Positions 2,924 to 62,792 of a DNA stretch of 64,000 nucleotides are shown in pieces. Location: assembly GCF_006345805.1 (NCBI RefSeq), contig NC_043025.1, positions 3,472,001 to 3,536,000 on the forward strand. The letters run 5' to 3'. Each line of letters begins with the position of its first letter. Position 1 is the stretch's first letter. Under the pieces are notes generated by a model that saw only the letters and a list, made by a program, of their open reading frames with translations, was not told where the DNA came from and searched no databases. The stretch comes from Octopus sinensis (lineage: Eukaryota). Position numbers and translations under genes: made by a program.

Positions 2924-29678
<26,755 letters not shown>

Positions 29679-32501: not shown

Positions 32502-33734
32502 CGAGGGACGTTCAATAAGTTATGCCCCTGACCCACTTGCATTTGTTTGATCTAGCTGAAATTTTGCATGTGCAATTATTCGTATCTCTATAGATTAAGT
32601 GGCAAATTACAGCTCTGAACTAATTATCAAGTGTGAAATGGAGCCTGTTGAGTGTCGAGCAGTGATCCGGTTTTTGTGAAAGGACGCACACCACGGGAGA
32701 CTTTTGATGAAATGAAAGTAACTCATGGTGATGATGCCCCATCATATGACCTTGTAAAACGCTGGCATCGTGAATTCAAATATGGTCGGAACTCCGTGGA
32801 AACAGCTCCCAGATCTGGTCGCCCCCTTCTGCCATTGATGAGGCATCTGTCCGTCAAGTTGAGGCTGCCATTTTGGAAGATCGACGCATAACAATTCGCC
32901 AAATAACCCATCAGGTCACAATTAGTACCGGGTCTGTGGAAACTATCATTCATGACCATTTACATATGCAAAAGGTGTCTGTCAGATGGATTTCCAGGTT
33001 GCTCACGCCTTTCCAGAAGCAAGAACGCGTCGAGTGCTCGAGGATGAATTTGGAGATGTGCCAAGAAGATGAGTCAAAATTTTTCAAAAGACTGATTACA
33101 CAGGATGAAACCTGGGTCCATCACGATAATCCAGAGACCAAAGCCCAGTCAATGCAGTGAAAGCACCGTGACTCACCCCCTCCAAAGAAGGCAAGGGCGC
33201 AACCCTCTGCTGGCAAGTTCATGCTCACAGTCTTCTGGGACCAGGACGGAGTAGTGATGACAGATTTCCTGGCAAAGGGTACCACAATTACAGGAGCCTA
33301 TTATGCTCCTATTTGAGGAAATTAAGAGAAGCTATCAAAATCAAGAGGCGGGGCAAGATCAGCAAAGGCATCCTCCTCCTGCAGGACAACGCTCCGGTCC
33401 ACAACTCGCGTGTCACCAGATCAGAAGCACAGGCGTGCGGCTATGAACTCCTACCTTGCACCCTCTGATTTTCACCTCTTCCCAGCCATGAAGTTGCTTT
33501 TGAAAGGGAAGCGTTTCCCAGATGATGCAGCCTTGATTTCTGAAGTCCCAGCGTGGTTGGAGAACCAGGCTGGGGTCTTCTAGAAAAACAGTCTCCAGAG
33601 CTGCATCAAACGATGGAAGAAATGCGTAACTCTGGGTGGTTCCTATGTAAAAAAAGACTAATAGCTGTGCCAAGTTTCGTTCCTCTTCTGCTATGGGAAG
33701 TGGATCAGGGGCATTACTTATTAAACGCCCATCG
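32502..33734 (+). mobile_element. Second mariner copy of the same family, defective
   Basis: TIR cgagggacgttcaataagt ... ttaaacgcccatcg with TA flanks; ITQDETWVHH followed by a premature TGA; small deletions. Confidence 0.93.
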
Positions 33735-34512: not shown

Positions 34513-34612
34513 NNNNNNNNNNNNNNNNNNNNNNNNNNNNNNNNNNNNNNNNNNNNNNNNNNNNNNNNNNNNNNNNNNNNNNNNNNNNNNNNNNNNNNNN
34601 NNNNNNNNNNNN
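34513..34612. other. Assembly gap (100 N)
   Basis: Exactly 100 N between an (ATT)n tract and a (TA)n tract, typical of an unsized scaffolding join. Confidence 0.99.
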
Positions 34613-34668
34613 TTATATATATATATATATATATACATATACATACTTATATATACATATAAATATCC

Positions 34669-38717: not shown

Positions 38718-41700
38718 ATGGAATTTGATGAGAATATAAGTAAACTTTTGCTTAGTGACACTCAATATATTAAAGGATATATTGAACAAAATTCACATAA
38801 AGTAAGTTGTTCTGTTGATTACCTTCTCAAAGTTGATTGTCATTTTATACACACCTGTGTTCCTAACTAACCACATATATTTGTCCATGATATTTCATTC
38901 CTTCCTTCACCCCCACCTTCTAATTCTCATTATCATTAGAGTTTATGAAAATTCAACCCAATCATGAAGCATGTCAGAGTTGATGGAATGTAAGTGAGAG
39001 AGAAGCCTGTCATCACACACTGCAACGGAGTATTCTGGCAGGAAATATTCAGTTAAGAGAAGAGAGACAGATGAAGCCAGTAGATGGATGGTGACTTTGT
39101 CATGACGTTCTCTTGCCATACACAGTTGAAAGTTCTTTTGGACGTCAGGAGTTATACCAATTCTTTGTTCTGTCAAATGTATGAAAACATCAAATCTTTG
39201 ATGAATCTTAGATCAATCCCCACTACACACTCTCTTCACTTTCTTTCCATAATCTAGACACAATCCTTTGCTACAACACCGAGAGGAAGAGATTATAAAT
39301 ATATGAGTGTGTGTATTATCGACACACTCACATGTATATGTATCTATCTATACCTGTGAGTGTACCTGTCTATAAATACAATACAAATCTCACCCCTAGA
39401 AACGCATCATTCCTCCTGTGTATGAGTCGAATACTTTATCTTCTGTTTCTGAGAATTGTGTAAGGCTTCTACCTTTCCTCTCCTAGCCACAAATTTTAGA
39501 TTCTTTATTGTTATTTCTTTTCAGATAAATCAACAAAATAGAGATGGTGACACACTACTACATCTGGCCTGTGCTCTCGGACACACAGAAATTGCTGAAC
39601 ATCTGTTGCAGCAGTCTGGCATTGATGTAAATGCTCTGAATAAAGATCAGAACACACCACTGCACCGGGCCTGTGTCATGGGACACACGAAGACAGTTAA
39701 ACATCTACTGCAGCACTCTGATATTGATGTAAATGCTAAGGATAGCGATCAGTGCACACCCCTACAGTTGGCCTTGTCACGGGAGACACGGAGACAGTTA
39801 AACATCTATTGCAGCACTCTAATATTGATGTAAATGCTAAGGATAGAATTCAGGACACACCCCTACACCGGGCATGTGACAAGGGACACGCAGAGACAGT
39901 TAAACATCTACTGAAGCACTCTGCTATTGATGTAAATGCTAAGGATAGCGGTCAGTACACACCACTACACCGGGCCTGTGTCAAGGGACACACGGAGACA
40001 GTTAAGCATCTACTGAAGCACTCTGCTATTGATGTAAATGCTAAGGATAGCGATCAGTGCACACGACTACACCGCGCCTGTGTCAAAGGACACACGGAGA
40101 CAGTTAAGCATCTACTGAAGCACTCTGCTATTGATGTAAATGCTAAGGATAGCGATCAGTGCACACCACTACACCGGGCCTGTGTCAAAGGACACACGGA
40201 GACAGTTAAGTATCTACTGCTGCACTCTGCTATTGAAGTAAATGCGAAGGATAGAATTCAGGACACACCACTACACCGGGCCTGTGTCGAGGGACACACG
40301 GAAACAACTAAACATCTACTGCAGCACTCTGCTATTGATGTAAATGCTAAGGATAGCGGTCAGTACACACCACTACACCGGGCCTGTGTCAAGGGACACA
40401 CGGAGACAGTTAAGCATCTACTGAAGCACTCTGCTATTGATGTAAATGCTAAGGATAGCGATCAGTGCACACCACTACACCGGGCCTGTGTCAAGGGACA
40501 CACGGAGACAGTTAAACATCTACTGCAGCACTCTGATATTGATGTAAATGCTAAGGATAGAATTCAGGACACACCACTACACCGGGCCTGTGTCACAGGA
40601 GACACGGAGACAGTTAAGCATCTACTGCAGCACTCTGATATTAATGTAAATGCTAAGGATAGAATTCAGGACACACCACTACACCGGGCCTGTGTCACAG
40701 GAGACACGGAGACAGTTAAGCATCTACTGCAGCACTCTGATATTAATGTAAATGCTAAGGATAGAATTCAGGACACACCACTACACCGGGCCTGTGTCAC
40801 GGGACACACGGAGACAGTTAAGCATCTACTGCAGCACTCTGATATTAATGTAAATGCTAAGGATAGAATTCAGGACACACCACTACACCGAGCCTGTGTC
40901 ACAGGAGACACGGAGACAGTTAAGCATCTACTGCAGCACTCTGATATTAATGTAAATGCTAAGGATAGAATTCAGTGCACACCACTACACCGGGCCTGTG
41001 TCAAGGGACACACGGAGACAGTTAAGCATCTACTGCAGCACTCTGATATTGATGTAAATGCGAAGGATAGCAATCTGTACACACCACTGTACCGGGCCTG
41101 TGTCGCGGGAAACACGGAGACAATTAAACATCTACTGAAGCACTCTGATATTGATGTAAATGCTAAGGATAGCAATCTGTACACACCACTACACCGGGCC
41201 TGTGTCACGGGAGACACGGAGACAGTTAAACATCTACTGCAGCACTCTGCTATTGATGTAAATGCTAAGGATAGCAATCAGTACACACCACTACACCGGG
41301 CCTGTGTCACGGGAGACACGGAGACAATTAAACATCTACTGCAGCACTCTGCTATTGATGTAAATGCTAAGGATAGCAATCTGTACACACCGCTATACGT
41401 GGCCTGCGTCACGGGAGACATTGAGACAATTAAACATCTACTGCAGCACTCTGATATTGATGTAAATGCTAAGGCTAGCGATCTGTACACACCACTACAC
41501 TGGGCCTGTGTCACGGGAGACACGGAGACAATTAAACATCTACTGAAGCACTCTGATATTGATGTAAATGCTAAGGAAAGCAATCAGTGCACACCACTAC
41601 ACCGGTCCTGTGTCGAGGGACACACAGATACAGTTAAACATCTACTGCAGCACTCTGATACTGACGTAAATGCTAAGGATAGCAATCAGGACACACCACT

Positions 41701-44700
41701 ACACCGGGCCTGTGACAAGGGACACGCGGAGACAGTTAAATATCTACTGCAGCACTCTGATATTGATGTAAGTGCTAGGGAAAGCAATCAGTATACATCA
41801 CTACACTGGGCCTGTGTCATGGGACACACGGAGACAGTTAAGCATTTACTGCAGCACTCTGATATTGATGTAAATGCTAAGGATAGCAATCTGTACACAC
41901 CACTATACCGGGCCTGTGTCGAGGGACACACGGAGACAGTTAAACATCTACTGCAGCACTCTGATATTGATGTAAATGCTAAGGATAGCAATAGGTGCCC
42001 ACCACTACACCGGGCCTGTGTCGAGGGAGACACGGAGACAGTTAAGCATTTACTGCAGCACTCTGATATTGATGTAAATGCTAAGAATAGCGATCTGTAC
42101 ACACCACTACACCGGGCCTGTGTCGAGGGACACACGGAGACAGTTAAGCATCTACTGCAGCACTCTGATATTGATGTAAATGCTAAGAATAGCGATCTGT
42201 ACACACCACTACACCGGGCCTGTGTCGAGGGTTACACGGAGACAGTTAAACATCTACTGCAGCACTCTGATATTGATGTAAATGCTAAGAATAGCGATCT
42301 GTACACACCACCACACCGGGCCTGTGTCGAGGGACACACGGAGACAGTTAAGCATCTACTGCAGCACTCTGATATTGATGTAAATGCTAAGAATAGCGAT
42401 CTGTACACACCACTACACCGGGCCTGTGTCGAGGGACACACGGAGACAGTTAAACATCTACTGCAGCACTCTGATATTGATGTAAATGCTAAGAATAGCG
42501 ATCTGTACACACCACTACACCGGGCCTGTGTCGAGGGACACACGGAGACAGTTAAGCATTTACTGCAGCACTCTGATATTGATGTAAATGCTATGGATAG
42601 CGGTCAGTTCACACCACTACACCGGGCCTGTGTCAAGGGACACACAGATACAGTTAAGCATTTACTGAAGCACCCTGCTATTGATGTAAATACTGAGGCT
42701 ATCAATGGGTACACACCACTCCACCAGGCCTGGGACAAGGGACACACGGATACAGTTAATCTCTTACTGCAGCATCCGAGCATTGATTACTATAAAAGAG
42801 ATACATCTGGTCACACACTACTACATCAGGCAGTTCTAAGGTGAGTCAGCATCATGGGTCATCCTTCTTCTTTCTCTCTCTTACTGTAATGACACTACCT
42901 TCTACTTTATTCAGTAATCACCGCCATAATTATTGTTATTGTTGTTCTTGTTATTGTTTTTATTGTTGTTGTCCCTGACTAGATCTTTCACTTCATCTCA
43001 TTCTCTATTACCACAACATCACATGTTCAAATCCTCTCTCTTACTTTTACTCCACATAAAACACCATACTTCTCCCTCCCTCCCTCCCTCCCTCCCCTCT
43101 CTTTTTCTCTCTCTCTTCTCTCTCTCTCTCTTCTCTCTCTTCATCTCTTGTAATGTCCCTCTTTCCTCTGACCCAGGGTTACGACCCTTTGTATCCTGAG
43201 TTCAAATCCTGCTGAGGTCAACTTGTTCGTTGTACCATAGAAAACATTGTGGTGTTTATTAAGATGTATATATATATATATGATTAATCAAGTGGTTAGA
43301 GTGTATATATCGATTATATTTATGTGTGTCTATATAATTATTGATGTAAACAGGTTGTATGTAGCTCATTAAATCTGTTTTCATAAATTAAAGACCTAAT
43401 AATTATTAATTATCTCAACCTCTATGATTTTCGCATTTTTTAATAATTTTCTTTCTTTTTGTATAACTTTCAGACAAAGCTATGATGTGGTTGGCATTGA
43501 TGCTATCCCAGGTTAGTTAATATATACATATTATATATACTCTCTTGTATTTTAATGATTTGGTCAATATTAACATCATCAAAGTACCAGTGAAATACTG
43601 GGGTAGATTTAATCAGCTGTACCCCACTAACCTTTAAATGACAGGTCTTGGGTCTGTGGAGGAACATGATAATAATAGTAATGGTAATGGTGTGGAGACA
43701 GTTCAGCTGACCACCACCACAGACAATACCATTTTTAATGTCTAGATTATACGAAATGTGTACAAGATTATTATGAAATTAATCCAAATATATCACAAAA
43801 ATTATCTTTTTATATATATATATATATATATATATACCGGAGTAAACACATAAATGTGAAACAAGGTGGAAAAAAGAGTACTCAAATACCAGTGGTAGAG
43901 TAATATGCTTTATTTTAAGCAGCAGAAAATTCAACAAAATCTGTTACTCTGAGTTTCTCCTTGCCGTTCATCAGACAGTTTTTGCTAGAATGGAACCGAT
44001 ATATCAATTCAGTCTAGACTCTTACAAACGCTACACCTTTTTAAAAAAATAGACTTGTTTGATTGGCCCTTTAGAAAAAAACGGTCAATCTTCGAGCGAT
44101 AAACAAAAGGTCAAAAATATATGTATATATATATAAAAATTTATAAAAAATTATAAAATTCGAGGAAAAAACCTTACATTGAATAAAATACATATTGACG
44201 TTAATGAAGAAAGTATAATTAAAGCATAGCAATTAAACCTATTATAAATATTACACTGCAATACATATTTATATTAAAGTGTACATATATATATATCAAC
44301 ATACACAGAAGGAAGCGTGCAGACGCCATACATATACAAACGTATAAATATAAATCTAAATATACACATAAATGCATTCGTACATATATGCACGCAATCC
44401 ATCTCGCACGCAAGTTAAAATCATCTATGTAGTGATTCTCATATACTGTGTAAGGGGGGGGGAACGAAAGAAAGGAAGAGAGAGAAAAAGGAACGAAGAA
44501 GGGGGAAGGACAAAAGAAAAAGGAGGGGTGGGGAAAAAACGAAATAAGAAAAAATTATGTATACAAGCTGTGTAACGGCATTCTTGGAGACAACTATACA
44601 AATACACAAGTTCGAATGGATACATACACATACAGTCGTGTATATGTGTGCTTAAGCACAAACATACGCTCACTTACACATACACAGATACGCATGCTTA

Positions 44701-45442
44701 CAAATACATATCCATGGTTATACACATACTTATATCAAAATTCTAATTTTTGACAACATTGCTTTTTTTAATATATATATACGAAAGGTATATAAAATAT
44801 ATATACGAAAGACATATAAAATATAACACCCTATTTTGGATCATCTATAAATAATCAAGGTAATAAATAATCAAGGTAATCCTATACAATACAATAACAT
44901 GAAATAAATAAAGTCGAATGTTTTTCCTAATGTATATGTAGAAACATAAGACTTTGCTATACGGATTAAAATCTGCATAGCTTGCAACAAAATCCATCGT
45001 AGCGCTCACACACCAGTTCAAGAGTCAAAATCAAAATTTCAAAATCAAAAAACAAAATATATACTCTATCCATATGGTATATTTATATTCGACATTTTAA
45101 ATTTAGCCGCGTGCCTACATAAGTTCATTAGCTCACTTCTTTGATTCAAAGAATTATTGTCTTTGAATAAAATGTACATTTTTTCTAATAAGCAAAGCTG
45201 GCACTTAAAATTATTTTTGTATGCTCCATGTCTGTATGGTGCCGCCCTGTCCAGAATGCTCCATGTCACGTTGAAAGGTGGGGTTTCCTTTTCTTTTAGT
45301 TCCCAGACATATTTTGCTAGGCTGGTCCTCTTCCTATTCTCTGGGTATTTAAATAAATTTTTATGAGAATACAATCTTGTTTTAAATGAATTTTCTGAAG
45401 CCCCTGTGTATGTCTTGTATTCTGATGAGCCTTCTACATATA

Positions 45443-45497
<55 letters not shown>

Positions 45498-47434
45498 GCG
45501 TGTATGTATGTATGTATGTATGTTGTATGTATGTATGTATGTATATATCACACACACATACACATGAATATATTTCTCCTCAAATCCATAAAATACACCA
45601 ACATAGGTAAATATATTACAACTGTCAACCTGTATGTTAAAACCATCTCATTATAGCTGAGACGTAATGCCATAGGATACCAAATCTAGTTGAAGAACAT
45701 GAACCAATGTTACTATCATGACAGAGCTTTCTACTGACATATCCATGCATAGTCTTCTGCTCATACAGGCTCATCCTTTCATCTGATGATACGCTGTGGT
45801 AGAGTCGTCCAAATTCTTTGGGAATGTATTCTTGGTTATCAGATAAAGAGTGTTGCTCACGGAGCTGCCTTCCTGTCATGCTCGAACCTCCTGCCTGGTA
45901 CACAGCCACTTCCCTCAGTTTCATTTCTTCCTTCAGCTGAGAAGTCTTTGTCATGCATGTTATTTGGTCACCCTGCTGGTGTTGGTGCCACGTAAAAGCA
46001 CTCGTGCTGGGGCGCCCAGTCCACACTTTTCCTTTTGTAGTTTACTTTGTACCTTCTCACATTATTCTGGCCTTACAAAACAAATCTCTTTGAAGTTATA
46101 CCACAAATACAGACATACATATGATGTGAGTTGTCTCACTTGCCTATGACTTACTTTCATGTGTTTTTAACACCACCAGACACATTGAGAATATATTCTC
46201 TCACACCTAAAAATGCAGCCAGCGAAGAACGTAACGACACACACTCCATGTTTGTGCGTTCGATTTTGTTTTGACATAAATTTTATGAACCCCTTATTAA
46301 TTTAGTAACATCAAAATTATACGCAAGTCCTAAAGGTCTTCTTTATTAAACTTAACCTGCTAATCTTGTGTTCGGTCCATTTGAACTCCCCTAAATTTAC
46401 TTCAGTGAGGGATAAACGTAGATTAGACTGAACCAATCTGTTTATTACATCTTAATAGATGTATCATGTCTCTTAAACACACTCATAGCAAGTTATAGAG
46501 GGACATTATGCAAGGCTAACTTCACTGACAAACATGAAATGTACATGATCGATTTGATCAAGTACCCAGTAGACGGCATTAATGACACATTGATAGCCAC
46601 CCTGATTTTCATGTAAATTTTCATTCTCTCTTTTTACTTCGACAAAGGATTCAGTGAAATTGAACATAACAAACTGGGATGGTATAACACCATTTCTTCA
46701 AGCTGTCTCTAGCGGCAACTTCAGAATAATGCAGGAATTCATTTCTAAAGGAACAGAGGTAAATGTGATCGATAATATCGGAAACAATTGTCTTCACCTT
46801 GCGGTGAGGAAAGAGGGGTTCCATTCTGAGGGTGAATCCTTAACTGTCTTGGATAAGGTAAGTTTTAAAATTATTTGTAAATATATATACGTGTGGATTT
46901 ATTTATAAGAGATAGAAAGAGAAACAGAGAGACATGATGGCAACCTTTAGAATGCAAGTGCCATGATAAATACATCCATTCCATTCTATGAGGGATTCCG
47001 AAAAAACAGCCCCCTGTCTTACTTCTTGTACACAACATTTATCCTCTGGCTTCTTGTGGACATGTCATAACAATATTGAATGTTAGAACACTAGAGAATG
47101 GATACATATAATATATAGTACATATATACATACGTACATACATACATACATACATACATACGTACATACATACATACATACATACATACATACATACATA
47201 CATACATACATACATACATACATACGTACATATATATATATATACATAGTGGCTGTGTGGAAAGTAGCTTGCTAACCAACCACATGGTTCCGGGTCCAGT
47301 CCCACTGCCTGGCATCTTGGGCAAGTGTTTCTGCTATAGCCCAGGGCCGACCAATGCCTTGTGAGTGGATTTGGTAGACGGAAACTGAAAGAAGCCTGTC
47401 GTATATATGTATATATATATATATGTGTGTGTGT

Positions 47435-47467
<33 letters not shown>

Positions 47468-47728
47468 ATTTGTCTGTCGGTGTTTGTACCCCTAGCATTG
47501 CTTGACAACCGATGCTGGTATGATTACGTCCCCGTCACTTAGCGGTTCGGCAAAAGGGACCGATAGAATAAGTACTGGGCTTACAAAGAAAAAGTCCAGG
47601 TGTCGATTTGCTCGACTAAAGGTGGTGCTCCAACATGGCCGCAGTCAAATGACTGAAACAAGTAAAAGAGTAAAAAGAGTAAACGAGTAATAGAGTATAT
47701 AATATATATACATATATAAGTATATATG

Positions 47729-47793
<65 letters not shown>

Positions 47794-48103
47794 TTCATTT
47801 ATTTATATTTATTAATTAATAAATTTTAGGGTAGCAAAAAATTCTAGAAAAATTCTCCGCTACCAGCGGTCAAGTGAGTAAAGAAAATAGTCAATAGACT
47901 ATGTAATATACATTCAAATATATAAGGGATGGCCATAATAGGACATCCGACTCACTAGAAAGAGCAGTTAAACTCCAAACCACTAATAGTTGTAATTCTG
48001 AAATGGAAAGAGAAATAAAAACGTTTACCCGATATTAGTGGTTTGGAGTTTAACTGCTCTTTCTAGTGAGTCGGATGTCCTAATATGGCCATCCCTTATA
48101 TGT

Positions 48104-48185
<82 letters not shown>

Positions 48186-48298
48186 ATATGGATCAAAATA
48201 GTTTAATGATCCAAACTGTTTTGATCCATACATGTAACTTCCAATGAATTGTTTGAGTGCCCCTCTCTCATTTGTTCACTTACTTTCACTCACATACA

Positions 48299-48366
<68 letters not shown>

Positions 48367-50263
48367 AAAATACAAATACATCAACATTTAACCATCAGTA
48401 GATCTAACAGTATTTACTGTCAAATTTTGCGCACTTGAAGCAACTCACTGATTCCCACATGAGTAACGGTCTCTACAGATTTGTGACTGTATTTCAGACA
48501 TTTGATGGTCATCTTTGTGTTGTGGTAATGTCCACTTTGATTCGAAGAAGCTATTCTGGCAGTCAAATGCCCTTCTCCCTCCATTACTGGAATTGTCTGT
48601 CAGACTAACAGTTTCCATAGTTTATCAAATAGAATGTGTTGGTGTCTTTCCTCAACCGTGACACCAATTCTTACTTCTTTTACTTCACCTTCATCATCCA
48701 AAGATGTTTCTTTATTAATTATGGAAACATCGTTGAGATATTTGGATAGGTCTGTGTGTTCTCTGTTATTTTTAACATTCATAGTTTCCATTATCTTTCT
48801 TGTATTTGACTTGATGCTATGATTTTGTTTATATTTGTGTACTATTGTACTTGTCCTTTTTATATTTCACCATTTGCAGTACTACAAGAAGCTCCAGCTT
48901 AGCAAAGGAGGCAAGCTTTCAAGCCTAGCAGTGGCTTGTTATCTGGCCGACAATGGAAGCAATTTTTACCACAGAAACGAACAGAATGTGATGCCGCTGG
49001 ATTTTATCGAGGATACAAATTTAAAAGAAAAAATTAAAAGACTTTTCCCACCTCCGGTGAAAGTATTTACTGAAAATGTCACGATTGACCAGTGAGTTTT
49101 CCCTTCTGTACATAATCATGTTCATATATTTTGCTTGGTTTTAATTCTCCCAATACGTTATTCTGTGTTTTGACCAAAGACCACACAACAACTGTAAGAA
49201 GAACAAGAAATAGAAAATACAGTCGAAGAACTCTATTTTGATTACATTCACATGATTGGTTGTGTTGATTGTTATACCACACTCTGCAATTTCTCTTTAA
49301 GTGTTAAAACCCGAGTAAGATGTTTCTTAGCTTAGTAAATAAGCACTTCCCCCGTACAAATAGATTCAACAAAATATTCAATAGTCACACTCTGCCTCAT
49401 TAGAAGCTAGACAGTATGCACATGCCTCAGTAGAAGGTTAATCTAACTAATTTTGATTATGATTCAATCTAATGAAGCAGAGAACATGTTTTTGGAGGAA
49501 CACATTTGATGTGGACAAGTTGTAGAGAAAATGTTTGTAAATCAATGATTTCTTGAGATGCACCAAAAACATTATTACATCATGCATGGCAGATAACATG
49601 GCCTTCTCTATAAATCTGGATTCAGCTTTAACTAGGGGCGGGTTTGGATGCAGAGCATTTGTGCAATTCTGTAAGGTGTTTTTGCTTGTATATATGTTAC
49701 GTCAGATATCCGCAATTTCCCTGTGAATGGGTTGTTTTTGTCTGACAGCCATGGTTGGAAAAGACACACAGGTCAGGAACTGAAAGGACCAGTTTGGTAG
49801 TTGGGCTGTTTTCTATATTCCATCCATCATAGAACCATTTTTTACCTTTTTCTTAGACTGAGATCATCAAGAGATTAGTTGTGCATTGAAGGCAGATAGA
49901 AAGCTGACATTTATTGCATTCAACTCATCAGTTTTCAAAACTATCCTCAGGTTTGGTATGTGCATATCAGACATGCTGCTTGGGGCATTGTTTTATTATA
50001 GAACTGTGGCCTGGTTTGTAACACATTGTTCACAAATACAAGAAGCTAGGGCAATTGTATCCTATCTGTCCATCCATACAATTCAAAAGGAATTGTCTAC
50101 GTTTAGAAAACTTGTTAAACAGATTAGGTTTTGTTCAGAAGAAATTGTCCCTCTACAAGAATTGAAGTATGTTTCTGGAATATATGTAGTTCGTTGTGTG
50201 TAAAGCAATTTTTTGTGATGTACCAGAGTCAAGACACATATTTAACAATATGTATGTTAATGC

Positions 50264-50297
<34 letters not shown>

Positions 50298-51898
50298 TGT
50301 GAGCGTAGAGTTCATATACACAGATATTTGCATTTACGTAATTGTTTAACGAAGATATTTTTATGTACTTTTACTGTGTCTCATAATATTCTGTACTCTA
50401 AACATGTACTCAATGCAATATTTGTTATAAATGAATATTATCAGTGATATGCCTCTATGTTTTGCTCAACAGATGTCTGCTGTGTAAATCTAGTGAAGCT
50501 ACAGTGACGTTTCAACCATGTGAGCACACTGTTACATGCAAAGATTGCTGTTCAGAAAATGAGCCTAAAAACTGTCCCGAGTGTCAACAAGTAATAGTTG
50601 ACAAACGTGGATTCGGTAAGAATAATATTTGATGATCTGTCTGTTTGTCTCATTGACTTTATGCTGTTGAATAATATACTTCATGTTACTATGAAGAGTC
50701 ACACCTGTCATAAATGTAGCAGATTTATGATAAAAGTGTCTTTTCTTTGTGATACTTTATCAATCACCACATCCACCAAACTTCGTCTTCGTCCAAATAC
50801 AAGGCTTGCTGCACTTCAAGAGGATACTGTTTGCAAGATAAGACTAATGAGTTATACTGCAAGTTAAACGGCGACTAACAGAAATATCAATAAAGCTGCC
50901 AGTTTCCCTCAGTAAATATCATGTTTTTACAGTCAATTACGAGTGATTAGAGGTGATTAATGATTTATCAGTATTTATCAGTATCTGATAAAGACAGCGT
51001 GAACATCAGAATGATTTTTGTAAAATAGGAGATTCAATGAGAAAATCTCAACTGAGGGATTAAAGAACAACATTAGAGGCTTTGATTGCTTAATTAATTG
51101 TTTTGCTTAATTAATTGTTTTGTGCTGCTGTGAATGTTTATTTGGTGATAGCTTCAACATATTTTGCAAAATTATCCTCCAGGAATTCTTCATGATTTAT
51201 CATGTTATGAAAATGCTAAACAATAATATTAGTCCACTGTTTGATCTGAGATGTCATCTCTTGTTAGGGTACGTACCCGGAATGTCTCAGGTTAAGACAT
51301 ATATTGTTGTGATAACTAAAAAAAATTAAATATTGATCGTTAAATTAATTTTATTGAACTGTGAACATATGTTTACATATAAACAAAGTATTTATGTTCA
51401 CGTATAAAATATACAAAGAATAATAAAATAGGAATTCCTAATGTGATTCGAACACACAACTCCTTGTTTGTAACCATATATAATCAACATTTGCTACATG
51501 GTTTGAATAACATTTGCATTCCATATTTATGATCATTCTTATGTAAATTAATAATCTTAAAAATATTACTGAAATCTCATCACATATCTTCTGAGTTTGG
51601 TAATATGGAGAAATGAGTTTAGACAAAATAGAGTTAATATTGTCTTTTGGAATAGGGAAATAAAATATGTTGTTGTTTAAGGGTAAACGAACGAGTACTG
51701 ACAAGGCTTTTGTTTGTTTTAAATTTTCTAAGAGTTTATTTTTGATGATGTTCAGCAAGACGTCATATTCTCACAGACTTAAGATGAAAAGTGTTCCAAA
51801 AGCAATTTCCATGTCTTTCTTTCTTTGATACTAAATCTTTTAATACATCCATTGTCCTTATCCAAGTACAAGAGTTTGGTTTGCTACTGAGATAAGCA

Positions 51899-51974
<76 letters not shown>

Positions 51975-54900
51975 CTTCAAAACAGATTTTGGCTACAAGA
52001 TTCAATACAATCAATGATATTGTCCTCATCATTAATCATGTTTTCCATACTCTCATGTTTTAGATGGGTGGTCACTGTCCTGGTCAGCTCTTATTCGTTG
52101 GCTGAAGAATATCTCTCACTTAAAACAGTCCAGCTTTTCACTGGTGGCATGCCCTTCCTAACACCAACCACATTTTTGAAAGGCCCTGGGAGCATTTTAC
52201 TGTGGCCCAAGCAGTAAAACCTTTGTCATATCCTCAAGAAGATTTCAATGTTGTATGACTTGATCTGGCAAACTCTCATGGGCCTCTACCAAAGAAATTG
52301 TTGATAGAAGCAGTGGACTTCTTTTATACACTGGAGAACGTTGATGATCTAATGAGGGGCTTTTGTAACAATTTCAAGATGTGGCAGACATCGGAATGTT
52401 TCACAACAGACTGACATCGTCTTGAAATTGGAATTGCTGTAGGTTGCCAAAAGTCAGTCATCTGGCTTGTGTCTGTTACTTATATTAGCAGATTTCCCAG
52501 AAGAAATTGCTCAAATGGAATCACCTAAAATGGCAATGGTGGATGATATTACAATTCTAACATGAAATGAAGATGATATGCAAATATTTGTGGGTAGACT
52601 GTATGGATCAATCACTTGTTCAAGGAGGAGGTTTAAGGCAATTAATTAATGCATTCATTTGTCAAAGGACATGAGAAGCAAGTGAAGTTAGGAGTAGCAG
52701 GAGAAACGATTCCAAAAGTTAAAGACAAACATTTAAGAAGCTTAGGAATATGCTAAGGACCATGGTACGAACTAAGAATGGGTTAAAAGCAATAGTTAAG
52801 TCAAAAGCGCTGGACAAATACAAGATCTGGTGCTTGCAGCCTGGTCTGTATCCTCATCTTGCTTATAATGTTTTGAGTCTCATTTCTTCTGAACCATTTC
52901 AAGTAGTTTCAGTGCAATAATGCGAGGGTGAACAGATATATGTAGTTGATGAGGTTTTGTGCATGTGAACTGGGGGTTTTAAGACACCTGTCATCGTCTT
53001 CTGCTTTACCTAGGTAGAATTATCAGAGAAGCTGACTAGCATTGTAATGTCTTCAGATATTTCTTGAGTCAGAGAACATTCTGGTGAAGTGTGATGTGGT
53101 CAGTTAAAATTAAAAATTGCAACCAACAACCTTCAACAAAGAGATCAGGTGTGTGTTTATCCTACTTGAAGTAGTGTGTCATGTGTTTGTGGTAAGATCT
53201 TTGCAGAACCAACTTGGTTGACATTGGAATTAAGCAGGAAGAAGAATGCTGGTTAGTGAAGTCTAGAGACGTGAGGACAAGGCCATTGATTTGGCACAGA
53301 TATAAGAGAAGAAAGACAATACAAAAAAGAGAACATGACATCAAGTGATAATTAAATGTGATAATTACTAGATTATTTGAGAACGGAGGATATCTTAATC
53401 GGGAAATGAAGTTTAGGCCATTCTGGTGTGGACCTTAACATTGTGTCATTTGATGAGGTCACAATGCATAGTATAAAAATGCTGTCCAACACCATAGTGA
53501 CCACCAATTGACCGTTGATGATGTGAATAACAAGGACAAAATATAGACCATTGATAGGGAAAGAGAAATTAAAGTTTGATGTGTAAAATTTGGAAATATC
53601 TTATTTTCAGAGTCTGTAAAACTGGAGGCGATGCATCTCAATATAGTGGCAACGAAGTTAGGGAAGGACTGGCAATTTGTTGGTGAGCATTTAATACCTA
53701 ATTGATTTTTATAAATTTTGCCTTCACTTGAGCTTCTGTTTGTTAGAATGATTGAGAACAGTTTCCATTCTTTTAAATTCCAATTGAAAGTTTAACTGCA
53801 AAGTAATTCTAATGAAGAAACTTCCTAAAATCGAGGTTTGCATGGTTGGTAAAATGGATTAATTTGAAGCCACAAAAGATTTAATATTCTCTTTTAAAAT
53901 AGGGATCTAAAATATGTTGTTGTTTATGTACAAACAGGTGAGTTAATGTCAATGGTTTCGTTTCTTTAGATTTTTACTATGTTCACTGGTAGGTTGTTGT
54001 TGTCATGGTTGTGGTAGATATCTGCCTTAATCTTCAGAAGAAAAGTGTTCCGGGTGCGGCATCATTCTTTCTCTTAGGAGAAGAGGATCTCATTATCAAA
54101 TGCAACGTCGTTAACCCAAGAGTGTGCCTTTTGTGCGACATGTTGTAGCCCCTCCCCTGACCAGTTTTTTTTTACTTTTGTTATAGCCCCAGGTCAGCCT
54201 ATAGTCGTGTCTCTAAATTGACAGGCCCCATTTTTGATTGTTTTTGCGTGTGGATTGAACTCCGCGCTGTAAGTTAATGAAACAAAACACAAATTATAAA
54301 ACAAAACACAAATTATAAAACTATTACCTTGTTTTAAATTTTGAGGCTTAAAATTTGGCAAAAAGGTTTTGTAAGGGATTATACTGCTATCCATGTATAA
54401 GAAGCTCCCATACTTTTTTAACCTAATTTTTAACAAAAATTGGTTCCTTCACATGTTAAAATATGGTAAACTTAACTTGATTTCATTTCTTATTTGAAAT
54501 TCTTTCCTCACCCTTTACAATACAAATATCATTTAGAAATCATGAACATCACAATATTCCATTTCTCTTTGTGTGAATGGGTAAGAACAGAAAGTATGAT
54601 TTATACAAACTTCCCATTATTTATAGCAATGTCTTGTACCTGCCCATGGCACCTGTGTACATCTAAGTAGACTGTCCTATAGTGAGATGTATTTACCTGG
54701 GGTATTGAGCAGTTGACCCCTGACATAGGATGTCAACATAATATCCTCTCAGTCAGCTGATAGAATTGATTTATCTAAATTTAGAGAAGACATCATCTAT
54801 GACAATGTCGATTTCTTATATCCCTGGAAGTCATACAAAATGTACCGGTCATATACTGGGGTAAAATAAACTCCCTAATAATATTCATTATCATCATCTT

Positions 54901-57008
54901 AAGTCCATCTCTCCACACTTGTATGTGTTAGATGACTTCTCCCACAAATGCTGTGAACCTTTGTTACGTTTAACCTCTTGTTTTCTTCCATTTGGATATT
55001 CTGGCACTTCTTTATCCAATTTTCATCTTCCATACTCTTCCCATGACTGTACCATTTCTTCTCTTGTGCCCTATCTCTGATTCTACTGAGACCCAGTTTT
55101 TCTTCCAGCTCATCTTTTCTCCAGCATTCCAATACACTAACATTACACTTCTCGTGAAGTATTCTCACCTCATTTCTTGCCAGTTTTCATACATCCTCCA
55201 CATTCAATGCATCGCTGCACTTTACAAATATACATCATACAATCTACCCTTCATTCAGAAAGAGAATTCTTTATTTGTCAGTAGGGATAACAGCTCTATG
55301 TACATTTTGCCACCTCATTCTGTTCTCTAATCACCTTACTTTCAGAGTAGTCTCTCCCACTCCTAATTATGTCACCTAGGTAACAGAAACTCTCGTCCAT
55401 GCCTTTCACAGTTATTCTTACAACAAACTATTCCTGTATATCTACTACTCACAAACTCCTTCCTCTCCATCAACTTGCCTCTGACCCCACATCACCCATT
55501 GTGTGCATTGAATACACAGTATAGAATCCCTATTAACCCCTTCTACCTGCTTATGAAATATGGTAACTTCACTAGATGATGTAGAGGTTGGTAGATGCAG
55601 TGATTCCTTCAGGCCCTAAGCGTCTGCATGTGTATGGTGTAGATGGTGATGACTCCCGTCTTCTTTCCTACAAAACTAAAACTTTTCTCTTTGCTAGCTT
55701 TACTCTAAAACCTGTCCATTATCGGATTCTCTCTAAATTGTGGCATTGGTCCAGTAAAAGAAATCCTTATTACGAGTCATGAACCCAAAATGGTTAAGTT
55801 GGTGTCTTTTAAAATATGTGTTGTGTACTTGATAGCATTATATTTTGTATTTTGTGTAATTAAGGTCATTCTGGTGTCATGCTTACTTGTATTTTAATTG
55901 GTCCAGGTGTACCTAATATTACTGGTATTGATAGTTAAAGTTATTTCTAAATGTTGATATGTTTTAATTGTTAATTAGTGAGTGTAGGAGAAGTAGGAGA
56001 GACATCACTGATGACTATTCCAGGTATTGATCAGGTGATGATTCAAAGCAGCTGAAATGGGATTCCTTTAAATGGTCTCTGTTACTGAAAAGGAGGCGCA
56101 CGGCTCAGAGATTTGGGAGTCTCTCCAGGTTGAGCCACTATTTCCCTGCATTGAGGGGTCACAATTCCAGTTCTATGGACATGAGATTAGACTGTCACAA
56201 GAAAGAATTGCAAGACGGATTCTTTAAGCTGAGCCACTTGACCGGAGACCAAGGAATAGACCAAGAATGAGATTGTTGGATAATATCTAAAGTCTTAATT
56301 GGTCAAGCTTGAGAATCCAACTGGACAGTAAGATGAAAGTAACTTTGAAGGGGGTTCCCTGGCGACTCTACCCCCACAACCCTTTTATGAATAGAGGGTA
56401 GAGAATATGAATAGATGGATGAGATAATGTGACTCTTTGGGTGATATTAATTGATTCTTTAGGGTCTCATACGCTATTACCCACACAACATTTTCCCTGC
56501 CATCTCTTTACCAGAAATTCTCTCAAATATAATTTTCAATACTTTTTAAAACATTTCTCCATTTCAATCCTTTATTTCAATTTCTTTGTTATCTTTTAAT
56601 CATCATTCCTAGAAATAGAGAACAATGTCTAATATTTTTCATTTTTCTTACCTATTTTTTAATTTCTCTCCCGATATAATATTGTTGTTATAGTTATTAC
56701 AATCTGCAATATGCATCTCTTATTTTATTCTTAATGTTGTTGCAATTATTTATTATTTTTGTATGTTTTGCAGGAAGGGAATTAGGAATTAAACAAATTG
56801 AGCTGGACTTTATCATCATGACTATCCAAAAATACTAAAACAGATTTTCCAGATGCTCCACTATTGGTTCAAGAGATGTGATCGAAAGAAACACGAAACA
56901 CTCAGAAATGCTCTTAAGTCACGTCATTGTAAAGAGGCATTAACATATCTAGACTCAGTGAATTCCATGGAAATGTTTAGTCTCATGTCAACCAACAGTG
57001 ATCTATGA
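38718..57008 (+). CDS. Ankyrin-array / RING-HC / death-domain protein (Mind bomb-related), ~1,430 aa; exons 38718-38801, 39525-42840, 43474-43511, 46648-46857, 48880-49091, 50473-50615, 53611-53682, 56774-57008
   Basis: ATG at 38718 (MEFDENISK..), GT-AG introns with matching phases, TGA ending at 57008, AATAAA at 57192. The reconstruction requires correcting 1-nt indels at ~39775, ~43497 and ~56812. Confidence 0.85.
39525..42840 (+). repeat. Coding tandem array: 32 complete 102-bp (34-aa) ankyrin repeats in one exon
   Basis: Consensus TPLHRACVxGHTETVKHLLQHSDIDVNAKDSxxx. Period measured as 102 bp (39839 to 39941). The 1030-aa ORF equals 35 + 29x34 + 9 residues. Confidence 0.97.
43935..43984 (-). 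ncRNA. Type I hammerhead motif with canonical core and weak stem II, intronic
   Basis: caaaa-a-ctgt-CTGATGA-acggcaagga-GAAAC-tcaga-GTA-acag-a-ttttg. It lies downstream, on the same strand, of the PLE fragment at 45 kb; a 3'-half copy is at ~36110. Confidence 0.5.
45066..45430 (-). mobile_element. Penelope-like GIY-YIG C-terminal fragment (second family)
   Basis: TYTGASENSFKTRLYSH..TSLAKYVWELKE..WSIL..CQLCLLEK..LNQRSELMNLCRH. Confidence 0.85.
47912..48109. repeat. Hairpin: 77-bp arms (47912-47988 / 48033-48109), 44-bp spacer
   Basis: ataagggatggccataataggacatccgactcactagaaag... and its reverse complement, 2 mismatches; resembles the end of the 35-kb palindrome. Confidence 0.85.
50473..50615 (+). 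CDS. RING-HC (C3HC4) exon of the ankyrin gene
   Basis: CLLC-x10-PCEH-x3-CKDC-x8-CPEC. Confidence 0.92.
52250..52870 (+). mobile_element. Degenerate R2/NeSL-like RT fragment (intronic)
   Basis: HRLEIGIAVGCQKSVI, AMVDDITIL, KYKIWCLQPGLYP. Confidence 0.6.
53611..57008 (+). CDS. Death domain (two exons: 53611-53682, 56774-57008)
   Basis: LNIVATKLGKDWQFVGRELGIKQIELDF(I)HHDYPKILKQIFQMLHYWFKR..ETLRNALKSRHCKEALTYL matches the death-domain pattern (LGxDW..LGRxLG...I...YP....Q...ML..W). Confidence 0.85.
54890..55560 (-). mobile_element. RTE-like LINE 3' remnant
   Basis: ELEEKLGLSRIRDRAQEKKWYSHGKSMEDENWIKKC resembles the RTE C-terminus; short (tga)n tail. Confidence 0.6.
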
Positions 57009-62400: not shown

Positions 62401-62792
62401 GTACTTTACTTCTTTCCTGCTCAGATCTCTTATTACTTTGCATCATTATAAGGTGCCAGATAACGAGAGAAGGCATGATAATGTTGAAGATGAGACTGAT
62501 CGCAACAGGAGCCAGGAAAGCAGCATAGAAAGATGGTGCGGACAACCAACAGCTACAAAGAAAATAGAAAGGCAATAAAGGAAAGAAATTTGTCAAATGT
62601 TCAGTCAATAAAATGAAATATCACAGAAGTATTAAGGGGAAGAGATTTCGATCCAAATCAAAACGAAAACATTTCTCATGTTTGCCACAAATTATGTACG
62701 TTAATGAGTAGAACATATTTTTTTGTATGTTACGATATCCAGACACACAGAAACAAAGACATACACGCACACACACATACATTTATACATGC

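Follow-up and report, generated by a model that had tools for sequence, protein, structure and literature searches.

Gene structure around the ankyrin array

The window analysed here is a 64-kb stretch of Octopus sinensis NC_043025.1, and all coordinates below are window positions on the forward strand. It contains an ankyrin (ANK) array of 32 full 34-residue repeats and one partial repeat with a 102-bp period. Tandem Repeats Finder delimits the array at 39550-42774 (period 102, 31.6 copies, 90% matches), and the Ank profiles of Pfam match it with PF00023 (E=6.7e-219, 29 stretches) and PF12796 (E=1.1e-217). Based on the splice sites, the repeat finder and Pfam, the array forms exon 2 (39525..42841), with phase 0 at both ends, an acceptor ttttcag/ATA at 39525 and a donor AAGG/gtgagt after 42841. 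These sites agree to within one base with the exon bounds of a preliminary description made from the sequence. The continuous reading frame given there proved incorrect; the exon is 3317 bp rather than 3318 bp long, and one base is missing in unit 3. Slicing into 34-codon units yields 32 complete units (39537-42799), followed by a partial unit 33 (42800-42841) that runs on into exon 3. In the AF2 model (pLDDT 88.6, pTM 0.80), each unit has two helices, at unit positions 7-14 and 17-24, and the units stack into an ANK solenoid. Foldseek matched this model to a DARPin, ankyrin-1 and MIB1 ANK at TM 0.8.

Exon 1 (38718..38801, located by tblastn) consists of a start codon and 28 residues (MEFDENISKLLLSDTQYIKGYIEQNSHK) and ends at a donor AAG/gtaagt. 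It matches the N-terminal end of P0275, a family member from O. bimaculoides (tblastn E=5.6e-7), and is 96-98% identical to the paralogues P11 and P12. Downstream of the array, exon 3 (46648..46857, phase 0-0) was identified by Pfam Ank_4 and Ank and by its splice sites. It completes unit 33 and adds one ANK repeat (DSVKLNITNWDGITPFLQAVSSGNF...LTVLDK), with 80-81% identity to P0270 and P0271, 'MIB2-like' proteins of O. sinensis and O. vulgaris. Exon 4 (48880..49091) encodes a degenerate terminal ANK repeat and a linker (YYKKLQLSKGGKLSSLAVACYLADNGSNFYHRNEQNVMPLD...), is 93% identical to P0270, and is covered by a PDB sequence match to the MIB1 ANK region 8v0e. It ends in phase 2, which fits exon 5 exactly. 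Exon 5 (50473..50617) encodes a RING finger (CLLCKSSEATVTFQPCEHTVTCKDCCSENEPKNCPECQQVIVDK) that matches zf-C3HC4_3 (PF13920, E=5.5e-10, with a score of 39.3 bits where the cut-off is 27) and is 96-98% identical to P0271 and P0272. Finally, the Death domain is encoded in two parts. The probable part 1 (53613..53693, SVKLEAMHLNIVATKLGKDWQFVGEHL) has a weak tblastn match to residues ~167-193 of P0272 (E=4.7e-4), and its region is 94% identical at the P0270 locus. Part 2 (56773..56966) carries a frameshift and was traced by tblastn in two frames and by alignment to the P0270 locus.

Searching the window with tblastn revealed collinear homology to P0270-P0275 over exons 1, 3, 4, RING and Death. The precomputed Pfam domains of these relatives are Death, Ank and zf-C3HC4_3. 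Ordinary family members have 390-478 residues and only a handful of ANK repeats, and the genome holds at least 150 matches to the family exons. A tblastn search with 120 ANK proteins, some of them with STAND domains, gave no further match within the 64-kb window, and the gene model, which has ANK, RING and Death only, contains no NACHT or NB-ARC module. Collectively, the array, as exon 2, belongs to a lineage-specific gene of Octopus sinensis that runs, in order, from a short N-terminal exon through ankyrin repeats and a C-terminal RING to a Death domain. In a subfamily on one chromosome, a single internal 34-residue ANK unit has been amplified within this exon to 25-38 copies.

The relatives are labelled "E3 ubiquitin-protein ligase MIB2-like" by NCBI. 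Like MIB1 and MIB2, the octopus gene has an ANK block followed by a C-terminal zf-C3HC4_3 RING, and its last ANK repeat and linker resemble the MIB1 ANK region (8v0e; fold match TM ~0.8). In contrast to MIB1 and MIB2, it has a Death domain after the RING and 33 ANK repeats instead of about nine, and the MIB/HERC2 domain is absent. This domain (PF06701) has nine matches in the genome and none on the chromosome of the array. We rejected a true MIB identity, given the absent MIB/HERC2 domain and the direct joining of the 28-residue exon 1 to the array; the name 'MIB2-like' is a best-hit label and does not denote orthology.

Turnover of the units and state of the window copy

Three paralogous arrays lie on the same chromosome and have 25, 25 and 38 units, compared with 32 in the window. 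The window flanks, from ~34.6 to 57.7 kb, are 93-96% identical to the paralogous loci, and segmental duplications of at least 23 kb contain the whole gene. Between paralogues, the end units share 97-99% identity; an internal unit finds its nearest match in its own array. Unit 1 and the final two units are positional orthologues; the internal units have been gained, lost and recombined through unequal crossing-over and gene conversion. All four gametes occur at 54% of informative site pairs in the four-gamete test, and unit W_10 of the window is identical to A11_16, an exchange between arrays. Moreover, some adjacent units are identical to each other, and higher-order repeats occur as well; units 11-14 and 26-30 form blocks with 97-100% nucleotide identity over 408-510 bp, while the mean amino-acid identity among all internal window units is 78%. 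In the young arrays, every unit is exactly 102 bp long apart from one indel per array.

These observations bear on a proposal of the preliminary description, a modular code comparable in logic to LRR or TALE arrays, read here as one repeat recognizing one element, with units that are rearranged allelically or somatically. The paralogues do differ in unit number and order, and their units recombine. However, identical units adjoin in blocks, including runs of identical recognition units (RIQD four to five times and NSDLY five times), which argues against individual tuning of each unit, and we see no sign of a one-repeat-one-symbol relation. In ANK solenoids, several repeats together bind a folded or extended protein ligand, rather than each repeat binding one element. 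Of the proposed shuffling of 102-bp units within the exon, the germline part holds, as seen in the arrays of 32, 25, 25 and 38 units. The somatic part finds no support. In the germline, the exon is already complete, is in phase, has normal splice sites and can be spliced as it stands. Assembly of the VLR type finds no basis in the 64-kb window either, which holds no cassette arrays or flanking cassette library. We therefore regard such a code as highly improbable.

The array contains no in-frame stop codon, where 11.3 nonsense events would be expected under neutrality (P(0)=1e-5). Because no stops occur where about 11 are expected, the array shows past selection for an open frame. The RING exon, with three synonymous differences and one non-synonymous difference from the paralogues, points the same way. 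At present, the frame of the window copy is broken by a 1-bp deletion in unit 3 (39774..39775), where the consensus GCCTGTGTC reads GCCT-TGTC and three substitutions adjoin the deletion (CACCGG to CAGTTG). Frame A runs from 39525 to ~39770, and frame B stays open between 39746 and 42841 (1032 codons). A second frameshift, a 1-bp deletion at TCA(A)TGAC near 56830, lies in part 2 of the Death exon, which, compared with the intact P0270 locus, has also lost 3 and 6 bp in frame and carries a further 1-bp deletion close to the stop. In total, five frameshifts occur across the three young copies, none of which is frame-intact; the one of P11 lies in array unit 9, and those of P12 affect array unit 24 and the RING exon.

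Most likely, the window copy is a very recently inactivated family member; the alternative, to which we attach a lesser but substantial probability, is that the assembly is wrong at those bases. In the latter case, an intact gene would encode ~1,400 residues with 33 ANK repeats, RING and Death. The assembly consists of 13,516 contigs and has a gap of 100 N located 5 kb upstream of the array, and tandem repeats and segmental duplications are prone to error. The uniform 102-bp units with one indel per array, the lack of stop codons, the location of some Death-exon indels in short homopolymers and the conserved RING exon all fit an intact gene. Against assembly error, the five frameshifts in three copies are independent, and two of them lie in unique exons (RING of P12 and Death of the window). 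Three lie outside homopolymers, and two are coupled with neighbouring substitutions. Furthermore, the older 38-unit paralogue has a 3.9-kb array and all other exons intact in the same assembly, and the NCBI models of close paralogues begin at the exon 3 Met and thus bypass the arrays.

Variable positions and tests of selection

Unit positions are numbered from D1 to K34, so that TPLH occupies positions 6-9, AC positions 11-12 and G position 15. Unit slicing reproduced the hairpin motifs reported in the preliminary description (RIQD, SGQY, SDQC, SNLY, SNQY, SNRC, N-SDLY and E-SNQC) and recovered the listed residues after H (R/W/V/L/Q) and after AC (VK/VE/VT/VA/VM/DK). The amino-acid entropy per position peaks in the hairpin (positions 1-5) and in helix 1 (positions 10 and 14). 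The values are 2.12 at position 14, 1.85 at position 3, 1.80 at position 5, 1.41 at position 28, 1.38 each at positions 1 and 4, 1.23 at position 16, 1.18 at position 2 and 1.06 at position 10. The two residues after AC had been described as variable, which is correct for position 14 but not for position 13 (V in 28 of 32 units). Similarly, the supposedly near-invariant framework is invariant at G15, L23 and L24, whereas positions 16 (H/D), 25 (Q/K) and 28 (D/A) are as variable as the hairpin. Much of the framework sameness reflects recent common ancestry of the units rather than constraint; overall, non-synonymous divergence is about as large as synonymous divergence (pN/pS 1.0).

The equivalents of the positions randomised in DARPins are 2, 3, 5, 13, 14 and 34, and four of these six are among the 8 most variable of the 34 positions (hypergeometric p=0.018). 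The variation does lie on the canonical concave face, formed by the hairpin and the inner helix, as had been proposed. The likeness to DARPins is partly circular, because the library positions were picked from positions that vary in natural ANK repeats. Outer helix-2 positions 17, 18, 21, 22, 26 and 27 are highly variable in 639 generic ANK repeats but quiet in the array. Variability in the array and in generic ANK repeats correlates with a Spearman coefficient of 0.43-0.54, and the array concentrates its variation more than the general tolerance of ankyrin repeats would lead one to expect.

The preliminary description had named a lack of non-synonymous excess at variable sites as evidence against its reading; an excess was found. 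At the DARPin-equivalent sites, omega is 1.5-3.2, with p from 0.40 to 3e-5 according to the method and the data used. Independent pairs give a pN/pS of 1.7-1.8 at these sites and 0.8-1.0 elsewhere. Codon likelihood on a fixed tree yields omega values of 1.92 against 0.83 for the remaining sites in the window array alone and 2.86 against 0.88 in the three young arrays, and a class-specific synonymous scale gives 3.16 (LRT 17.5, p=3e-5); these tree-based tests are inflated by recombination among repeats. Site-wise omega exceeds 1 at positions 2, 3, 4, 5, 10, 13, 14 and 34 and is far below 1 at positions 8, 15, 23 and 24. The most conservative analysis, which counts every distinct codon a single time, yields an omega of ~1.5 (p=0.40) when only the window is used and ~2.5 (p=0.03) with three arrays. 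Positive selection at the binding-surface positions is therefore suggestive and not proven.

A competing explanation is relaxed constraint only, in which a young array drifts, the hairpin and helix-1 sites are merely tolerant and solvent-exposed, and the diversity is unselected and without a role in recognition. The overall pN/pS of ~1.0 agrees with this, as do the framework omega of the codon models (0.83-0.88), which is not significantly below 1 (0.87 in the young arrays, p=0.30), and the correlation with generic ANK variability. The intact older array has an omega of only ~1.15 at the DARPin-equivalent sites, which is not significant; nor is the conservative count for the window alone, and recombination violates the tree behind the strong p-values. 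The other exons, with a pN/pS of 0.9-1.2, together with the framework omega near 1, fit relaxed or neutral drift too. The newest differences between units (up to 3 nt) are scattered over the whole repeat, with 46 non-synonymous and 10 synonymous changes, and 18 of the 46 fall at the sites singled out in the preliminary description. Nevertheless, drift should not leave the tolerant outer positions quiet (omega 0.34-1.13) while concave positions reach 2.3-4.1. An omega above 1 is out of reach of neutral drift, and it persists both with the class-specific synonymous rate and in the conservative count of three arrays. We consider relaxed constraint as the sole cause rather doubtful, though a serious alternative.

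A mechanical or scaffold role, in which a solenoid of 25-38 repeats serves as a spacer, spring or multivalent platform, like that of ankyrins or NOMPC, and it is repeat number, not the surface residues of each repeat, that counts, appears improbable. In length, the array resembles ankyrin-1 and NOMPC, whose solenoids of 24-29 repeats rank among the best matches in sequence and fold, and runs of identical units are present. However, such a role leaves the concentration of change on the concave face with omega above 1 unexplained, and the gene model pairs the array with RING and Death and has no membrane or cytoskeletal domain. Overall, the best explanation, which we hold to be probable, is an amplified ANK array that is turning over within a RING-Death gene and diversifying its concave face, in a copy that is likely inactivated.

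Possible function and comparison with known systems

In the preferred reading of a diversifying array, the protein would act as an E3 ubiquitin ligase in which the concave face of the long ANK solenoid binds a substrate or ligand, and the Death domain would link it to death-fold signalling or oligomerisation. The focus of amino-acid change on the concave face, above the synonymous rate, would then reflect selection that diversifies binding specificity within a birth-and-death family of an innate-immunity or cell-death kind. We infer E3 activity, Death-domain signalling and an immune role from domain names only.

Immune receptors of fungi already show repeats that differ mainly on a predicted binding face, and among known systems the highly internally conserved (HIC) repeats of fungal NLRs come closest. 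The ANK, TPR and WD repeats of these proteins, as in the Podospora nwd/het-e/het-d family, are near-alike tandem units of variable number (Dyrka et al. 2014, PMC4986451). Their units recombine within and between paralogues, and hypervariable sites with signs of positive selection lie on the concave face, made up of inner helices together with a beta-hairpin or loop (PMC4986451). Repeats count as HIC if they share at least 85% amino-acid identity along a stretch of 100 residues or more, and such repeats are reported in only 0.8% of metazoan repeat proteins (PMC4986451). The octopus array is similar in its alike units, repeat-number variation among paralogues, exchange and concave-face variability. 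In contrast to the fungal NLRs, its host is an animal, its partners are RING and Death without NACHT or NB-ARC, and the window copy is frame-broken; moreover, the mean identity of 78% among its internal units is below the HIC threshold except within blocks.

Marine invertebrates have lineage-specific Death-fold expansions that combine repeat 'sensor' and ubiquitin-system domains, and superstructure-forming ankyrin repeats have been proposed as invader sensors (Kaur et al. 2021, PMC8195603). The TRADD-N proteins at the centre of that paper are, according to its authors, very few or absent in cephalopods. The octopus family resembles these systems in being large (at least 150 exon matches) and lineage-specific, with a Death-like adaptor, ankyrins and ubiquitin-ligase domains; the ANK-RING-Death order and the amplified array are absent from that description. 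In a more far-reaching form, the family might be a cephalopod class of germline-diversifying receptors, with recombining ANK arrays under concave-face diversifying selection, repeat numbers that differ between individuals, ubiquitination of pathogen or transposon proteins and death-fold signalling. We regard this form as unlikely. If true, the cephalopod ANK-RING-Death class would be the animal counterpart of the fungal HIC-repeat NLRs, with an E3 ligase replacing the NOD.

The array shares a near-consensus framework with DARPins, and the best fold match of its model is the extended DARPin 6mol_A (41% identity, TMq 0.82). DARPins were derived from natural ANK statistics, and the resemblance is therefore expected. 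In contrast to DARPins, the octopus array has no capping repeats of the designed type, its unit has 34 residues instead of 33, position 13 is near-fixed, and positions 1, 4, 16 and 28 vary. Compared with the canonical ANK repeat of 33 residues, the extra residue aligns in the loop between helix 2 and the hairpin. A 34-residue period is a common variant and does not disqualify the units from ankyrin membership.

Array structure and the ANK-RING-Death gene

Based on Tandem Repeats Finder, positions 39550-42774 form a single array with a period of 102, 31.6 copies and 90% matches, and no second period. The array occupies an exon of 3317 bp with canonical splice sites (acceptor ttttcag/ATA at 39525, donor AAGG/gtgagt after 42841), in which Pfam recognizes approximately 30 ankyrin repeats (PF00023, E=6.7e-219). 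When this exon was sliced into 34-codon units, 32 complete units were obtained at 39537-42799, together with a partial 33rd unit whose remainder is supplied by the next exon, and all of the motifs listed in the preliminary description were recovered. Unit 3 measures 101 bp: one base is absent between 39774 and 39775 (consensus GCCTGTGTC, here GCCT-TGTC), with three substitutions adjoining, and thus the reading frame is broken after approximately 2.5 units. Downstream of the break, a second frame is open for the remaining 1032 codons.

The family was found by a protein search with the C-terminal exons as the query. The relatives carry the NCBI name 'E3 ubiquitin-protein ligase MIB2-like' in O. 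sinensis and O. vulgaris, with one further member in O. bimaculoides, and the Pfam domains precomputed for them are Death, Ank, and zf-C3HC4_3. Mapping these proteins onto the window yielded a collinear model on the plus strand, in which all checked phases are compatible. Exon 1 (38718-38801) contributes the start codon and 28 residues, exon 2 (39525-42841) the ankyrin array, exon 3 (46648-46857) ANK sequence, exon 4 (48880-49091) a terminal ANK-like segment, and exon 5 (50473-50617) the RING (PF13920, E=5.5e-10). These are followed by a probable first Death exon at ~53613-53693 and a second Death exon at 56773-56966. This is a large family, whose exons have at least 150 matches spread over many contigs of the assembly (2.72 Gb, 13,516 contigs). 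Its ordinary members have 390-478 residues and a few ANK repeats, 2-3 of them being 34-residue units of the amplified type. No publication on this octopus ANK-RING-Death family emerged from literature searches.

Other assignments were considered. A true Mind bomb was rejected, since the MIB/HERC2 domain has no match on this chromosome and 9 genome-wide, and a TRP-channel or ankyrin-cytoskeleton context, considered early, was abandoned after the RING and Death exons were found. As a protein query, the array retrieved only generic ANK proteins, at no more than 49% identity. STAND, caspase, Death, and GT4 'conflict' proteins score high against it owing to consensus-like ANK repeats, not orthology, and were not used for function.

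Units were numbered D1 to K34, such that TPLH occupies positions 6-9, AC 11-12, and G 15. The highest amino-acid entropies are found at positions 14 (2.12 bits), 3 (1.85), 5 (1.80), and 28 (1.41), followed by 1 and 4 (both 1.38), 16 (1.23), 2 (1.18), and 10 (1.06). Four of the six equivalents of DARPin-library positions (2, 3, 5, 13, 14, and 34) fall within the eight most variable positions (p=0.018). The preliminary description had placed the variation in the hairpin and at the residues following H and AC, against a nearly invariant framework, and this picture holds in outline but needs correction in three details. Of the two residues after AC, position 14 is variable, but position 13 is nearly fixed, with V in 28 of 32 units. 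Within the framework, G15, L23, and L24 are unchanging in all units, but positions 16, 25, and 28 vary. Finally, much of the framework identity reflects recent ancestry and not constraint, because synonymous and non-synonymous divergence are approximately equal overall (pN/pS 1.00).

In the AlphaFold2 model of units 16-25 (pLDDT 88.6, pTM 0.80), helices span unit positions 7-14 and 17-24, and the best structural matches are the extended DARPin 6mol_A (TMq 0.82), ankyrin-1, and the ANK domain of MIB1. Based on these helices and matches, the hairpin/loop is predicted to hold positions 1-5 and the inner helix positions 10, 13, and 14, which would jointly form the canonical concave binding face. 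In sequence alignments, the residue that is extra relative to 33-residue repeats sits between helix 2 and the hairpin.

Paralogous arrays and unit turnover

Three further arrays lie on the same chromosome: two of 25 units each, at 8.81 and 9.36 Mb, and one of 38 units at 1.72 Mb. From ~34.6 kb to ~57.7 kb of the window, the non-coding flanks are 93-96% identical to those of the paralogues, and the arrays are therefore part of segmental duplications of the whole gene. A scaffold gap of 100 N at 34513-34612 coincides exactly with the upstream edge of this homology, which begins at 34614; the upstream junction of the duplicated block is therefore unassembled. In the 38-unit gene, the reading frame stays open from exon 1 across two extra ANK exons and the array to exons 3 and 4, RING, and Death, and thus at least one long-array member looks intact. 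Its array has a higher-order period of eight units (816 bp).

Several features of the relatives were also observed. The two additional ANK exons of the oldest paralogue (1.72-1.74 Mb of C29, the chromosome carrying the window) lie between exon 1 and the array; the window's gene is without them, and its intron between exon 1 and the array is only 723 bp. Adjoining the 38-unit gene is the locus of the annotated relative P0270 (C29:1684758-1695108, minus strand), an intact paralogue in which exons 3, 4, RING, and Death are present without an upstream array exon and which is 93% identical to window positions 45549-54732. This locus is a truncated duplicate whose protein model begins at a Met in exon 3. 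On C27, weak DNA matches to the array unit (66% identity) occur at ~9.96, 10.32, and 10.75 Mb, close to exon matches of the same ANK-RING-Death family at 10.1-10.2 Mb, and may represent further, older arrays.

At the ends of the array, unit 1 and the final two units can clearly be matched by position to units of the paralogues, at 96-99% identity. The internal units are closest to fellow units of their own array; for instance, units 11-14 are 97-100% and units 26-30 97-99% identical, and unit 5 is identical to unit 9. Moreover, within the 102-bp unit, 54% of the informative pairs of sites show all four gametes, and hairpin types occur joined to several different helix-1 types. Collectively, these observations demonstrate unequal crossing-over and inter-unit exchange in the germline, and so bear out the earlier suggestion that the array diversifies by shuffling of 102-bp units. 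Somatic diversification is not supported.

Possible selection on the concave face

Selection was assessed by three approaches. In independent nearest-neighbour unit pairs, the six DARPin-equivalent sites have a pN/pS of 1.7-1.8, compared with 0.8-1.0 at the other sites. A custom codon likelihood on a fixed FastTree topology gave, for the window alone, an omega of 1.92 at these sites compared with 0.83 (difference p=1e-4); tested against 1, this omega has p=0.006 under a shared scale and p=0.07 when the synonymous scale is class-specific. For the three young arrays, namely, the window's copy and its two young paralogues, omega is 2.86 compared with 0.88, and 3.16 with the class-specific scale (LRT 17.5, p=3e-5). 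For the intact older array, it is 1.15 (not significant) compared with 0.62. Because recombination violates the tree underlying this likelihood, we added a count in which each distinct codon state enters once per position; the window alone then gives an omega of ~1.5 (p=0.40), and the three arrays give ~2.5 (p=0.03).

Site-wise, the codon likelihood places omega above 1 at positions 2, 3, 4, 5, 10, 13, 14, and 34, almost exactly the variable sites first listed from the sequence, and near zero at positions 8, 15, 23, and 24. Across 639 generic ANK repeats, the outer helix-2 positions 17, 18, 21, 22, 26, and 27 vary as much as the concave ones, and the same positions are quiet in the octopus array. 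The concave-face pattern is probably not mere structural tolerance. An excess of non-synonymous change at the variable sites was thus found (omega 1.5-3.16, p from 0.40 to 3e-5); it is real on the concave face, and its formal significance is method-dependent. Outside the array, exon 3 differs from the paralogues by 7-14 non-synonymous and 0-1 synonymous changes, and the RING exon shows the reverse (S3:N1).

Functional state and comparison with known systems

The 82 young units contain no in-frame stop against 11.3 nonsense events expected under neutrality (P=1e-5), and the old array likewise contains none against 7.1 expected. Additionally, all units except one per array are exactly 102 bp. 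Together with the changes in the RING exon, these features favor past function. The evidence regarding present function points the other way. All three young copies are frame-broken, in five different places, two of them in non-repetitive exons; in the two young paralogues, the breaks fall in array units 9 and 24 and in one RING exon. Relative to the intact P0270 locus, the Death exon of the window has a frame-shifting 1-bp deletion, as well as in-frame losses of 3 and 6 bp and a further 1-bp deletion near the stop; with the deletion in unit 3, the window's copy therefore has two frameshifts. That these are assembly errors, in which case the protein would be intact and have about 1,400 residues, is a substantial possibility, somewhat short of even, and we lean towards recent inactivation of the window's copy. 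Furthermore, framework omega is ~0.87, pN/pS of the other exons is 0.9-1.2, the newest differences are dispersed across the repeat (N46:S10), and the NCBI models of close paralogues begin inside exon 3, all of which, like the broken frames, argue against present function.

Domain order, amplification mechanism, and the concave-face focus of change are established here, and the named domains suggest how the protein might work. The RING would make it an E3 ubiquitin ligase, the ANK solenoid may be the substrate- or ligand-binding part of that ligase, and the Death domain would tie it to death-fold complexes. The evolutionary regime suggests that the family takes part in some fast-changing interaction, most plausibly defence. 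The recognition code per repeat envisaged in the preliminary description is not supported.

Fungal NLRs have repeats that are polymorphic in number, are exchanged between loci, and carry sites under positive selection on the concave face of the ANK repeats; among metazoan repeat proteins, only 0.8% have such repeats (Dyrka et al. 2014, PMC4986451). In marine invertebrates, Death-fold proteins that combine ankyrin 'sensors' with ubiquitin-system domains have undergone lineage-specific expansion, and cephalopods have few TRADD-N class proteins (Kaur et al. 2021, PMC8195603). The octopus array resembles the regime of fungal NLRs in its highly similar, recombining repeats with hypervariable positions on the predicted binding face, but differs in that the repeats are joined to a RING and a Death domain. 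The case is genuine and fairly tidy, in a host and a domain context that are both unusual, and the broken frames weaken it. If long-array members are expressed, they would provide a rare animal example of the fungal-NLR regime, attached to a putative ubiquitin ligase, and a concrete set of loci for studying it in octopus, namely, the four arrays of this chromosome, including the intact one. Innate immune receptors are poorly known in this animal group. Should the young copies be dead, the locus would mainly exemplify birth-and-death turnover in a large lineage-specific family and would also warn that current gene models omit array exons.

Other elements were noted within and around the gene. 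A CT-rich microsatellite (~43150-43260) lies directly downstream of the array, and the segment at 43179-43797, with the end GGTTACGACCC...GAGTTCAAATCCTGCTGAGGTCAAC, looks like a SINE-like element; it is 90% identical at the oldest paralogue, where the flanking intron is far more diverged. Three ORF copies with a common peptide including YTGASENSFKTRLYSHK (9026-9862, minus strand; 9675-10106, plus strand; 45069-45647, minus strand), one of them within intron 2, have no Pfam match and probably encode a repeat-element protein. Mariner-type transposase remnants are present on the plus strand at 16711-17295 (PF01359 Transposase_1, E=3.9e-26) and at 32774-33157, the latter sharing an N-terminal peptide with the former and having no Pfam match. 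Finally, an open exon at 62144-62620 on the minus strand matches PF00002 7tm_2 (E=1.8e-13) over the final transmembrane helices of secretin/adhesion-type GPCRs and is part of a neighbouring gene on the opposite strand, unrelated to the array.
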